Shown here: piece after piece, positions 18,401-24,400 of the stretch
Numbering within the stretch: position 1 is the stretch's first letter
Layout: each line of letters begins with the position of its first letter
DNA from: Bugula neritina
Lineage: Eukaryota > Animalia > Bryozoa
Reading direction: 5' to 3'
Assembly (NCBI GenBank): GCA_964035545.1
Contig: OZ037773.1
Coordinates: forward strand, 6,725,751 to 6,789,750
Length of the DNA stretch: 64,000 bases
Made by a program: the position numbers and the translations under genes
The notes under the pieces: model-generated
What the model saw: only the letters and a program-made list of their open reading frames with translations
Told to the model about the DNA's origin: nothing
Database searches by the model: none

Positions 18401-21400
18401 ATATTTTCACACCTGGTTTATGAAATACTAATACACTATAGAAATCTCTGCTGCGTGTTGTGTCTATTAATTTGATGACTCTTTTTCTGTGGCAGATTCG
18501 CTCCTATGACATAAGTGCTGAGTCCACTTTCTCTCAACTCAGATATGTTGATCTCGACAAACTGCTGAATGGAGTCGGACAGGTGAATCATTCTGTTTTT
18601 ATATCTTAGTACTTGTTGTTAAAGAATTGTAAGTCTGTTAAGACTAGTAGCTGTAAGAATATGTCTATCAAACAAACAAACTCTAAGAAAAGAAAGTCAG
18701 CCAAAGATTGTATTTTACTAAATTAAAATTGTCGAGTTCAGTTTTTAGACATTTTACTATCTTTACAAATAAATTAAGTGTTAGTCTCGGTATTATAGTA
18801 GCACACAACAGTTTTTAGTCATGAATTTATCATTTTGTTACAATATATTTTACTTTTTTGGAGTTTTCTCAACCCCGAGAGCCTGTTTCACTTTAGTGAG
18901 CCCAGCAGTGTTGCACACTAGTAAGCTGCTGCATGGGTTTCACATTCTTTCCACCTTCCACTTCATTTCATTCAGTTGGCTTCCATTTCTTGGCCAATTC
19001 TAATATGTAATTATTTTCTTTCCTTGGAGAAGATCTGCTATTGTTACCTGCTTTACTTTACTGAACCCCTATTATGTCTGCATGTAGTTATGTAGTGTGG
19101 AATTGCATTCCTATTGGTTAGGAGATGAGAGTGGCTGATACCATAAGTTTATAGCTTACATTACGTGTAGTATGTTGAGATTCATGTTATTGCTGAAAAC
19201 GAGCACACAACTCCAAATTTGCTGTGTCAACTGCACTAAATACATTTTTCAATCTTAAAAATAAAGTAGCCAAGTGATAGTTTTCCATGGCCATAGTATT
19301 GCTCCGAATTTCATTGCTATACCAGTGATTGAAGATCTGCTGTCAAAAAGTAGTTATCAGGCAGTTCTGGTGACTGGTACTCGCTCTATGTTCCACACAC
19401 ACACATGCTACTTAACTCTGACATTCCAACTTCTAATCAGAGTTGTGCCCTCAATCCAATAGTGAGATTCAATTGCATTGTTTGCAAACTTTATGAAATA
19501 CTTCATCACTAACCAGTGCTTTTCATGGTGGCAACATGAGTCTTATGAATTTGACAGCAGTTGATTTAGTATCTGAAAATTGTAGCATTTATGTTCATTT
19601 ATCGAATTGAAGTATAATATTACTATGTAGACACTACTTTAGCTTACTCGGCTTGTACTGAACTGATCTATAAATGCACTCTATGAAAGTTACCTTTTTA
19701 TGATTTTTACCCGAGTTCAATGTGACAATAATGACTGGTTTTTTATGAAATCAATTTAAACTTTTCTATCTGAAGCTGTTGCATTAGTTTTGCAAATATT
19801 GTAACTATAGGGATAAACTTTAAGTTATTGATGATTAGTTATTGATCTTAGATAACAACTATTAGTTATAATTAATTTTTCTGTTGTTTTATTGTATGTA
19901 CAGAATATAGTGAAAAAAATGAACACAGGATTTATAATTGTGATGAGACAATAAATATTAATAAAGCATAGAGATTTTACCATGTTTTAAGCATTCCAGC
20001 TTTCATTGTTATCAGAAACCAGTTATTAATAAGACCGTATTAACTAAGTTTAAGTTGCCTTTATACCTTCACGATTTTCGGTCAGAAGTTTTTTTCAACA
20101 GAGGTATAAACGCAACTCAACTCACACCATTGTGACCTATTTTCTCTTTCATACTCCTCCTCTTAAGCCATCTAAACTACTAAAACAAAAGAAATAGGTT
20201 GGTTGAGCAATGTCTTTGTTTCAACGCCCTATTTTAGGTAAGTCACTTAGTCTAAGTTAGTCACTCTGTGAAAGGCCTTTCAACAGTAAAATTTTCACTT
20301 TCTTCATCACTCCCTTGACCTTCCTCACTCCCTTGACCTTCCTCTCTCTCTTCACTTTCCTCTCTCTCTTCACTTTCCTCACTCCCATCACTTTCCTCAC
20401 TCCCATCACTTTCCTCACTCCCTTGACCTTCCTCACTCCCATCACTTTCCTCACTCCCTTGACCTTCCTCTCTCTCTTCACTTTCCTCACTCCCTTGACC
20501 TTCCTCACTCCCATCGATTGCACCAATGTATACACTTGCAACATTATCTTCATTCCAATTTGGTAAGATTATAGGTTTTTGTGTTGTTGATCGGAATTCG
20601 CTGAGTTGCCAGTCGTTATATCTCTCTGCTTTTCTACTATTAACAATAGATGCGTTCATGTGCATTCTTCGGACACTTATTTTTCCATCAGCTTTTTTTA
20701 TTTCTTCTGATAGTTGGCCTATATAATGCGGCGAATAGGACTTCCTGCCTTGTATAGTAGTCATTAGCAACTCTGTGTTTGGTACTGTCAGTTGTGGACT
20801 TTGTGGGTCTTCAACTTTTGTCTTGATATTGTGAGCTATCTCTCTGTCATTGTTACTCACTGACAACTTGTCATAGCCTTGAAACTCAATGTCTCCTCTC
20901 CCATTCATTTCCACCTGTATTTCTGTCTCCGTCAGTACTTCTCTTTTTAGTTTTAGTGTTCCATTCTGTACTCGTATTTCTACTGTTTTCTCTTTTAGAT
21001 CTCTTAAATATATTTCTGTTTGAGTAGTTTGTAGGCGTATACAATTTAGTTTTGTAGCTAATTTATGTTTGGTGGATATTTTCAAAGAGGTACCTTTTAA
21101 ATCTATTTCTATCTCTGGTAATTCCCTTTCCCCACTTTCCTGAATTTCCCAAGTTTGAATCACATTTTCTTCTATGCATATTTCAGCTGTTATGTATTCA
21201 GTAATGCAGATTTCTACCTCATTTTCTACTTTAAATATTACTTCCGCATCTCCTTCTAGATTCTCTAGTTTCAATTTGCTGAATCTCTGTTGACATACTT
21301 CCATGACAATCACCTAAAACAAAAAAAAATTATATTTCTATAAAAAAAACTCAAACTTCTACAATGCTGAGCTTACCAGTATTTTCTTTTATATTATACT

Positions 21401-24400
21401 AAAGCCACCATGTACTACCAAATTAACATGATGGTTGATACTAGGGCATTAAAATTCTGGATAGTTTTTTTTCTCGGTTTTTATTATTAGCACGGAAGAT
21501 ATTACAATATAGCATGGCTGGAAATTCACCAGCCTTCCAATAATTCATAGCTTGTGTTGTGGTGTTTGTATTATTTTACACACTACAATGTCTAAGTCTA
21601 TCAATAATGCCAAAGCTACAATGCGTTATAAAGCTATATAGTTGGCTTAAGAATTGTAAACTAGGTCAAATAGTATCATCATTTACATGTGCGCTATTAT
21701 TATAATGTAAATTGATAAGTTATAAAAAAATTCAACAATGCAGTAAAATTTCAAAAATTATTTAATACTTTTTATTTCTGACAACATGTGAGCTTTTTCA
21801 TAAGAAAACAGCTGTCTTTGGCCTTCGCTGTTTTCACTAAACTAGTAACGCTCAGTTGCTTTAGCTACCGGTGTGCTCTGATTGGCTGAACAGTTTATAA
21901 TGTTTTTGAGCAGTTACATCCCATCCTTGTCTTTAAAGGGTTGTTTTTTTAGGGTCGTATAATATGAAGTATTTCTCCTACAAACAGAGGTTGCATCATC
22001 TGTTGGCTTTGTTGAAAAATGTCAGTTCCATGCAAGGTCTTTCCATGTTTTATGGAATTATAATTTTTTTTTCTTTTAGTTTCCAAATGTGTTTGCAGAG
22101 CTCAGTGCTGTGTTTTGTTTGCTGAATTGCTGAGTTTTGTCTTGTGGTTATATAATTTTACTTAGTTGTTGGGTTCATATATTTTCTCGGAAATTTGACC
22201 TACTGTATGAGTACTGCTCACTGTTCAGAACATCTATCAATTAAATTCTAGAAAAATATGCATTAATTTTTGTGTGTTTTAGGATAATAAATAGGTAGCT
22301 TAGAAAATGTACTTTGTTTTAGTTAATTGAAATTTTAGTTTAATACACCCATTTGCTCTGGTTTTCTTGAGCAGGATATCATTTAATTTGGATCTTGTAC
22401 ACAAATCCAGCCTTAAAGCTTACACATGCTTGAAGTATTTCAATAATGTCTTGTGTTGAAAGACAGAGACAGAGTTTTTGCCTAAAGCCTAACTTTATGT
22501 GAGTTTTATCAAATATACGAATTACCTAAAAACATTAAAAATATTATGATAAAATATCTTACCTTTGGGATGTGGTGGTGTAACCTGTGTCCAACAGTTT
22601 CTAGAACCTTGTAAATAGTACCCATATCTTCATCACTATTTTCATAATCTTTTCCATAAATTTTCCCTGCTTCACCGTGTGCCATAATGCAAAGGAACAG
22701 AAAGGAAATGTTTTCCCTATGAACATTTAACTTGTTATCTAATGTCCTAATTAAATTTCTAAATGTCCAATCATCTTTTACATAGATATCAGCAGTGTCC
22801 CAGCCCGTTTCAAGTAAAGCTGCCTCTGTCCAATCCTTCTCGCACTCAGCATGTTCTCTCAGGTTGGCACCACTAAATTTGTTGTAAAATATTACTGCAA
22901 GCGGTTTACAACTTTCATTTCGTTTGGGAAGAAAAAACTTTGTAGGAAAATAATGTGAATTGATTGCAAAAACTGCAGCCTGTGAGAACTCACAGGACTC
23001 TAAAATATCTTGTAGGTGAGAACCTAAATATCTTTTTATGCAGTCTATTTCTAGCCAATTGCTTAACAGTTCCCTTCCTTCATTTTCTTTCAAACCATTT
23101 TTTAATGCAGTTTCATTTTCAGAAAACCCACCCTCAGTGAGTAGCAATATTTCATGATCTTCTTCCTTATGCCTGTCAAAAATTAATGGAACTGCATCCC
23201 ATTGCTGGTTTTGTGTGGCCACTATCATAGCATCTCTATCTTCTTCTATTTGCTGGCTGACGTAATACTTCATTAGCAATTTGTATGCTTTCAGGTCATC
23301 TCCTAATGTTAGTGACATCATCATCAAATTGTAACCTTTACTAGAAAATCTTGGGTCTACTTTATTTTCTCTGGGGTAGTAGAGATGTGTTCTTTCATGC
23401 AGAGCATTATATACTCCATCAGGTGAAAGCTCATCTAGCAATTTTCCAGCTAACTCATATAGACCTTTCTCACAAGCTTGAAAAATTGAACTTTTTCCAT
23501 CCATGTTTTTGTTTGTTATCATATCATCTGTGTTTGCTGCTTCTTCTCCCATGTTTACATTTAGCAAAATATCAATTTCATTTCTTGCTTTAGCTTCAAC
23601 TGCTACTTGTAAAGCATTGTTACCCTCCCAGTTTTTATGCAATAAAATATCAGTATTCAGTTTTAGGTTTCCTATGTTTTCAAGTTGTTCGGTTATCCAG
23701 CGAACTGTATTTTGTCGTTCTTGCTCTGAAGCTGCTGAAAGTGCTAACATTAGCATGTTGTACCCTAATGTGCATTCTGGTTTATGCTCTATCTCACAGG
23801 GACACACATCAATGGTGCGGTGCAGCAGCATGTCCAAATAACCAGCATTGGTTTCTAAAATTCCTCCAATAATCCTGAGAAACCTGTAATTCCCATATTC
23901 ACAGGCTGTAAGCACACAACATCTGTCGAAATGGTTTTTCTGAGTTAACAACTTTGTAAATAAATCCTCTGGCAGTTCTGACAACAGTGTAAGGATATCT
24001 TCGTTATGGTACTTGGCTGCAGCATGTAAAACGTTGTTGTCATTATCTGACTGTAAAAGAACTTTCTCTTTATTACAGAAATTGAATTTCATTATACTGT
24101 CTAGCAGACATTTAACTGCTCGGGAATTCTCTTCTTCAATTGCAAACAATAATATGGGCAGGTTTCTAGAATGGGAGGTTTTTGATGTTAGTATTTGTAC
24201 AAATTTTTCTACCCTCTTCTGGTATCTTCTAACTTTTGTAGTAATATCTTTGTTATTGCTAATGTTTTCACAGAGATAACGAATAACATCATCCATTTCT
24301 AAAAAAAATGTCCAGATATTTAGTGAGTTTTGTTTTCAGTATAACCCAGTTTTCTCTTTATAAGCTTAAAACCCAACTTTCGTTTTAAAGCCGAGTATTA

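Follow-up and report, generated by a model that had tools for sequence, protein, structure and literature searches.

A probable ankyrin-repeat gene with a strongly diverged caspase domain, nested antisense in a WD40-gene intron of Bugula neritina

Within the window, by which we mean the whole 64,000-nucleotide (nt) stretch of Bugula neritina DNA analysed here (contig C9:6725751-6789750 of a 216-Mb genome), an intron of a plus-strand WD40-repeat gene encloses a second gene on the opposite strand. We consider it highly probable that this nested gene is genuine, present in a single copy, and made of two exons that together encode a cytosolic protein of about 928 amino acids (aa), with an ankyrin solenoid joined to a strongly diverged caspase domain of the C14A type. 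Its layout is that of an initiator caspase in which an ankyrin solenoid stands in place of the death-fold prodomain. The list of open reading frames (ORFs) holds the two parts as a minus-strand ORF of 595 aa at 22509-24296 and another of 350 aa at 20261-21313; joining them in phase 0 (Table 1) gives the sequence ...HHIPK/VIVMEVCQQ..., where the slash marks the junction, and a product with one coding intron. Both ORFs, the intron at 22562-21314, and the positions of the His and Cys residues stand as given in a preliminary description of this DNA, which had also seen correctly that the gene is nested and antisense and that its single coding intron splits the caspase domain just ahead of the Cys strand.

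The N-terminal part of the exon-1 product matches the Pfam Ank_2 model near its start (E-value 1.1e-9; 39.2 bits vs. a cut-off of 27.3), and the first ankyrin repeats are the only ones recognisable by sequence. An AlphaFold (AF2) model of the exon-1 protein, calculated from ten sequences, has a mean predicted local distance difference test score (pLDDT) of 76.6. The top 50 Protein Data Bank (PDB) matches of this model in Foldseek are all ankyrin-repeat proteins, and VIA, a fold search independent of Foldseek, returned the ankyrin repeats of MIB1 (Z 19.3 over 293 residues), the sensor domain of RNase L (Z 17.8), and Fem1B (Z 17.1). Pfam searches of the exon products detected no CARD, DED, or death domain. 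The modelled fold confirms residues 25-425 as a predicted ankyrin solenoid that replaces a CARD or DED prodomain. The Ank_2 match and the caspase large-subunit (p20) fold lie in one unbroken exon-1 ORF.

Residues 454-578 of the same model are best matched in VIA by caspase-1 (3d6f_A; Z 12.5, root mean square deviation 2.5 Å, 116 aa, chain residues 153-278), followed by caspase-2 (Z 12.1) and a zebrafish caspase (Z 12.0), and on the model this segment is a caspase p20 fold. Sequence searches point the same way. With phmmer, and with a profile built from four sequences for the final 196 residues of exon 1, almost all PDB matches shown were caspases, at E-values of about 1e-3 and over the His region. 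A five-sequence p20 profile found 147 proteins at E-values of 1e-3 or lower among 1.84 billion representatives, and its nearest library relatives (E-values from 7e-18 to 1e-10) themselves pass the Pfam Peptidase_C14 model. A multiple alignment with relatives from the bryozoan Watersipora, two paralogues on contig C7 of the same genome, and canonical caspases is collinear through strand beta1, the Arg179 column, the IMAHG motif, the Cys strand, and a putative small subunit (p10). In a set of 151 sequences, the p10 region aligned with the Pfam-positive Watersipora proteins P0012 (domain i-E-value 1.5e-4) and P0074 (1.2e-3), values that are modest when taken alone; the small-subunit stretch of the window protein aligns with Watersipora LAKEIKKANGITPLSKMHTNAA. 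At the sequence level, caspase homology is demonstrated transitively, via these Pfam-positive relatives.

Several results weigh against the assignment of a caspase domain. The Peptidase_C14 model (Pfam ID PF00656) gave no match at an E-value of 1 or lower when the exon products were tested separately, and the window gene is absent among the listed genome-wide PF00656 matches (29 further matches stand outside that list). For exon 2 there was no PDB sequence match, and when modelled alone in AF2 it folds as low-confidence beta hairpins (pLDDT 36.8). The two statements of the preliminary description on architecture, that a degenerate ankyrin array takes the N-terminal part with no CARD, DED, or death domain and that a caspase fold with its His and Cys retained takes the C-terminal part, agree with the Ank_2 match, the AF2 model, the fold searches, the alignments, and the Pfam-positive relatives.

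In word-based protein searches, the only close relatives of the protein are three exon-level ORFs (Table 1) from three syntenic loci of the Bugula neritina complex (L006, L007, and L008), one of them encoding a B. neritina hypothetical protein and the other two located on metagenome contigs. Because the three loci are collinear with the window along their whole length (7-21 kb), we regard them as orthologous copies from sibling lineages within the B. neritina complex, their neutral divergence amounting to about 0.2 substitutions per site. Exon 2 is present and open in all three, starting each time at a conserved AG, and the donor GT is kept in L006 and L008. Indels in the exons are all multiples of 3, whereas in the intron 14-18 of the 20-26 indels per pair (about 70%) are not. 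When a frame of 928 codons was evolved neutrally in simulation, 0.15% of the frames were still open at a divergence (d) of 0.05 and none of 2,000 at d of 0.1 or more. Since both ORFs are open in four lineages some 0.2 apart, with only in-frame indels, they represent more than chance.

The intron has a wider distribution than the Bugula loci. The same phase-0 IPK/V intron is found in the two contig C7 paralogues and in the Watersipora subatra RefSeq proteins XP_067939287.1 and XP_067939689.1, and we take this family intron, which splits the large subunit, to be an old one. Alignment of the spliced protein to contiguous caspases leaves no gap at the junction, and the read-through tails past IPK vary among the loci in both length and sequence, as intron sequence should. 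When either exon or the Watersipora protein P0074 served as query, word-based protein searches returned no full-length spliced model, the matches being confined to exon-level ORFs of Bugula or the query itself.

An alternative that has to be weighed here is that the two ORFs are never joined, so that the product of exon 1 alone would be an ankyrin protein whose caspase remnant is cut short within the intron, and the downstream ORF would be separate or unexpressed. The observations on its side are those that speak against splicing. In NCBI model EB796_017671 of the B. neritina annotation, as in the gene calls on the metagenome contigs, the protein ends by reading through into the intron. At the donor position L007 has TT instead of GT. 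The sole public sequencing run that contains the locus is taken to be DNA because its contigs run uniformly over the intron with no joints; a Logan contig carrying exon 2 (L038) has intron sequence upstream of it. Metagenome contigs scanned for the junction pattern yielded no spliced junction. However, the read-through tails are unlike between loci, exon 2 has remained open with in-frame indels only, its p10-like part is under purifying selection, and it opens, right at the conserved AG, with the strand predicted to complete the caspase fold; moreover, the Watersipora RefSeq models splice the same intron. We therefore judge the unjoined arrangement quite improbable. Comparison among loci makes a strong case that the two exons form one gene, and it is from this comparison that splicing in vivo is read. 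The unusual donor of L007 (TT at L007:10335-10336, on a JGI contig from sample 3300002729) has an in-frame GTAATA 15 nt downstream; it could stem from an error in sequencing, point to a cryptic donor, or mark the copy as disabled.

The gene evolves fast. The ratio of nonsynonymous to synonymous substitution rates (dN/dS) is 0.59 overall. In the ankyrin part it is 0.52-0.55 in the three deeper comparisons and 0.81 between L006 and L008; around the catalytic dyad it is 0.36-0.73, in the linker insertion it reaches 1.0-2.4, and the small subunit, at 0.15-0.48, has the lowest values in the gene. The high overall ratio, together with an exon nucleotide divergence close to that of the intron and flanks, counts against a functional gene and could fit a decaying pseudogene or a chance pair of ORFs in intronic DNA, for which dN/dS values of 0.55-0.9 may also be cited. 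We nevertheless consider such an origin most improbable, as 928 codons have stayed open in four lineages, no neutral frame survived in the simulation beyond the divergence given above, the exon indels are uniformly in frame, and the p10 ratios are low. What the sequences suggest is a fast-evolving gene with a constrained catalytic core. The preliminary description had called the gene lineage-specific, and its restriction to this lineage holds; the rapid evolution comes in addition. Positive selection was considered for the pair L006 and L008, whose exons differ by 6-7% and whose intron differs by 2.7%, and was rejected: the flanks differ by 5%, and the low figure for the intron is due to a 750-nt block that is identical between the two loci. 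This block (L008 positions 3251-4000) lies in loci that are otherwise 5-6% different and in an intron about 800 nt longer than that of the window; it may have arisen by the recent insertion of a repeat or be a mosaic produced in assembly.

The preliminary description had further proposed that the gene was inserted as a mobile or retroposed unit. It is true that the gene has fewer introns than its host, a nested antisense site, and one large first exon, all of which might suggest a recent retrogene or the cargo of a mobile element. However, its intron is at the ancestral position of the family and the nested position is common to the three syntenic Bugula loci; in B. neritina the orthologue sits within an opposite-strand gene model that carries WD40 Pfam families. 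The gene is also single copy in its own genome, and a repeat search found no direct or inverted terminal repeats flanking it. Given the family intron, the shared nested position, and the lack of flanking repeats, the proposal of a mobile or retroposed insertion fails, and we see hardly any probability left for it.

The catalytic residues can be placed with respect to canonical caspases. In the alignment, IMAHG (His540) falls in the columns of the canonical THG and MEVCQ (Cys585) in those of QACRG, and R480 aligns with Arg179. VIA pairs model residue 578 with caspase-1 residue 278; in caspase-1 numbering we take exon 2 to begin at 279, so that Glu583 presumably corresponds to Gln283 and Cys585 to Cys285. 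Glu thus replaces Gln283, and Gln replaces Gly287. The acidic residue at the Gln283 position is common to the window gene and the two Watersipora relatives (D-x-C-R motif); the C7 paralogues, like the Logan relatives P0006 and P0047, retain Gln there. The linker between the subunits carries an insertion of about 165 aa that is missing from the Watersipora relatives, the C7 paralogues, and canonical caspases and had no Pfam or PDB sequence match. A conserved IEID-like stretch in this linker is mentioned as a lead only.

The foremost alternative to an active enzyme is that the caspase domain is a pseudo-protease or regulatory module of a real spliced gene, maintained for its fold and serving as a cFLIP-like decoy, a scaffold, or a partner of true caspases, a possibility that we regard as somewhat unlikely. 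It would account for the pentapeptide EVCQQ in place of QACRG, for the acidic residue at the Gln283 position, and for the missing equivalent of Arg341, where a loop shortened by 5 residues has a Ser in the Arg column. The failure of Peptidase_C14 on both exons, the high dN/dS, and the neutral evolution of the 165-aa linker fit it as well, and the many canonical caspases in the genome could serve as the true effectors. On the other hand, His540 and Cys585 are invariant in the four Bugula loci, and the segments flanking them are nearly unchanged despite a protein divergence of about 30%, the residue before His being Ala or Ser and a few positions of the Cys strand varying. The Watersipora and C7 relatives (D/E/Q-x-C motifs) likewise retain both His and Cys. 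In the pseudo-caspases known so far, it is usually the Cys that is lost, and a likely example in this very genome, locus L009, has lost it (DASFG). For the window protein, proteolytic activity appears close to an even prospect, if slightly short of one. Canonical Asp specificity is doubtful because of the Glu at position 283 and the lack of an Arg at position 341, and the P1 preference of the enzyme, if active, would probably not be canonical Asp.

If the protein works as a protease, the following sequence of events may be envisaged. The ankyrin surface would bind a protein partner or a ligand, and clustering driven by this partner would bring caspase domains together, as in proximity-driven activation. 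The long, freely evolving linker would be the likely processing site, and the His540/Cys585 dyad could then cleave substrates. A broader reading, speculative and rather improbable as a whole, is that the window gene, the two C7 paralogues, and the Watersipora relatives constitute a private bryozoan subfamily of caspase-derived proteases. In the window gene and the two Watersipora relatives, which have an acidic residue at the Gln283 position and no Arg at that of Arg341, the Asp pocket would have been rebuilt and the P1 preference would have switched from Asp, the C7 paralogues still having Gln at the former position. In Bugula, the enzyme would be coupled to an ankyrin sensor and a rapidly evolving linker and act as a one-chain sensor-protease in immunity or colony allorecognition, as part of an expansion that has given this genome roughly a hundred caspase loci. 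Metacaspases and paracaspases offer a parallel for such a shift of P1 specificity away from Asp.

Table 1. Features of the nested gene and its host intron, in window coordinates
Feature	Position	Strand	Evidence
Exon 1, coding part, from ATG to Lys578 before the donor	22563..24296	-	578 codons; orthologous Bugula ORFs 64-70% identical
Phase-0 GT..AG intron, 1249 nt, between Lys578 and Val579	21314..22562	-	Sequence and conserved position; donor AAG/GTAAGA at 22563/22562, T-rich tract then acceptor TTTTAG/GTG at 21314/21313
Exon 2, coding part, including TGA stop	20261..21313	-	350 codons; open orthologues 67-74% identical in three Bugula loci after AG acceptor
Predicted ankyrin-repeat solenoid, residues ~25-425, ~8 helix-pair repeats	23022..24224	-	Pfam Ank_2, AF2 model, fold searches
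Predicted caspase large-subunit (p20) part, residues 454-578, up to the strand preceding Cys	22563..22937	-	VIA fold matches, PDB sequence matches
Arg179 equivalent, R480	22857-22859	-	Alignment
Putative catalytic His540 (codon CAC, in CIMAHG)	22677-22679	-	Alignment
Putative catalytic-Cys strand, VIVMEVCQQ	21272..21313	-	Gap-free alignment over the junction to contiguous caspases
Cys585 (codon TGT, in VIVMEVCQQ)	21293-21295	-	Alignment
Glu583, at the canonical Gln283 position	21299-21301	-	Alignment
Intersubunit-linker insertion, ~165 aa, predicted beta-rich, Bugula loci only	20780..21271	-	Alignment
Small-subunit (p10)-like region, spliced residues 757-845	20513..20779	-	Alignment to Watersipora p10, lowest dN/dS
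18-nt tandem repeat, 11.7 copies, acidic Ser/Glu/Gly tail	20302..20512	-	Tandem repeat finder
Candidate AATAAA polyadenylation signal, ~370 nt past stop; weak	19888..19893	-	Read from sequence
Host intron of WD40-repeat gene, enclosing the whole nested gene	18583..24724	+	Splice signals (CAG/GT at 18582/18583, AG/G at 24724/24725), WD40-like exons

The subfamily of the window gene is represented elsewhere in the genome by the two tandem paralogues on contig C7, which lie 25 kb apart (L003/L005 at C7:9055299-9058673 and L043 at C7:9079853-9083332). Each has a 450-aa N-terminal helical region in which Pfam found no domain, and a Lys/Gln-rich repeat inserted past the His. The IPK/V intron is present in both; a compact second exon carrying QSCTG was seen in at least the first. 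More generally, a genome-wide search yielded at least 179 exon-level Peptidase_C14 matches at E-values of 0.01 or lower with 150 of the 300 candidates scored. These matches are often clustered, e.g., at C1:32.8-35.5 Mb, C6:2.5-6.3 Mb, and C7:5.0-7.7 Mb, and they suggest that caspases have multiplied very strongly, to some 70-100 loci or more in the 216-Mb genome.

Some of these loci show other domain combinations. About 2.6 Mb past the window, at C9:9355000-9360500 (L036), a caspase p20 exon recognised by Pfam is preceded on its own strand, some 2 kb upstream, by Ank_2 exons (E-values 3e-23 and 5e-8); together these are probably a canonical ankyrin-caspase gene. ORFs with the COR-A domain (C-terminal of Roc) adjoin caspase p20 exons at L030 to L035 (C7:5084500-5089500, C7:7680000-7685500, C1:3543500-3549500, C3:4509500-4515000, and on C6), with an E-value of 2.8e-9 in L035; the arrangement suggests fusions or pairs of ROCO-like and caspase genes. 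The best Pfam caspase match of the genome (E-value 1.9e-34) is L009 (C4:4999494-5003312), a single frame of 345 aa with DASFG and no Cys, which is likely a pseudo-caspase.

The acidic repeat tail of the nested gene is unique to the window copy, its orthologues terminating shortly after the p10 region. Just downstream of the stop, at window positions 19988-20181, there is a short high-copy repeat: contig depth in the DNA run rises there about 300-fold (36,710 vs. about 100), with loose ends at 20049-20087. A search of Rfam gave no match at 18500-24800. The host is recognised by WD40-type plus-strand exons in the window and by WD40 Pfam families on the B. neritina host model, and plus-strand splice signals fit the intron at 18583-24724 that the preliminary description had placed in a putative WDR27 gene with 19 introns. 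The frame of a host WD40 exon at window 17235-17855 (plus strand) continues open into a long Ser/Gly-rich low-complexity stretch, which coincides with a strong GC skew at 17.5-18.0 kb. Long TA-rich microsatellites of the dinucleotide type at 9880-10163 and 33100-35330 give rise to spurious YIYIYI frames.

Caspases with an ankyrin prodomain (ANK caspases) have been published from parasitic flatworms and from the annelid Alitta virens (Genome Biol Evol 2024, PMC11463336), those of Schistosoma having been described by Lee et al. 2014 (cited in PMC11463336). Ankyrin and Peptidase_C14 domains also co-occur in three clusters of the ESM Atlas, one eukaryotic (mostly arthropod, 951 aa) and two bacterial (about 440 aa), as well as in the library relative P0031. 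Together with L036, these cases mean that the architecture is already known and is recurrent in this genome, so that the uniqueness implied in the preliminary description was overstated. New here are the phylum and how far the protein has diverged, together with its rebuilt pocket, its linker insertion, and the truncation of the gene in annotation. The survey of 60 lophotrochozoan genomes in PMC11463336 included no bryozoan, and the present gene extends ankyrin-prodomain caspases to this missing phylum. It is also an extreme case, in which the caspase domain has fallen below Pfam detection with the dyad kept, the pocket rebuilt, and a very large linker. That existing annotation missed or truncated it indicates that lineage-specific cell-death or immune genes can hide in introns. 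Taken singly, it is one divergent family member of moderate weight; with the caspase expansion of the genome, it joins a set of candidates for how colonial animals may couple recognition modules to death-fold proteases.

Compared with the published ANK caspases, the window protein has the same order of an N-terminal ankyrin prodomain replacing CARD or DED and a caspase domain after it, and it is likewise lophotrochozoan and lineage-specific. In contrast to them, it has EVCQQ, no Arg341 equivalent, the 165-aa linker, an acidic repeat tail, and a caspase domain below Pfam detection, and a fusion independent of the flatworm ANK-caspase clade is at least as likely as common descent with it. The eukaryotic ESM Atlas cluster has the same domain pair and gave the top feature match (0.90), a measure of language-model similarity that involves no alignment. 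The likeness to RNase L goes no further than layout, both proteins having an ankyrin solenoid ahead of an effector enzyme; the two effectors differ, and no homology is implied past the repeat fold.

The Watersipora proteins XP_067939287.1 and XP_067939689.1 share with the window protein the IPK/V phase-0 intron, the acidic residue at Gln283, and a similar p10-like stretch (LAKEIKKANG...MHTNAA in Watersipora, ...MHMNAS in the window), and XP_067939689 has an N-terminal helical module weakly similar to that of the window protein. Unlike the latter, the Watersipora relatives pass Peptidase_C14, have short linkers and other C-terminal extensions, and gave no Pfam ankyrin match. Finally, the canonical initiator caspases (caspase-8, -9, and -2; MEROPS C14A) differ from the window protein in their death-fold prodomain, in having Gln283 and Gly287 where it has Glu and Gln, and in a longer Arg341 loop that retains the Arg, but they share with it the succession of a prodomain, p20, linker, and putative p10, as well as the positions of the His-Gly pair, the Cys, and Arg179.

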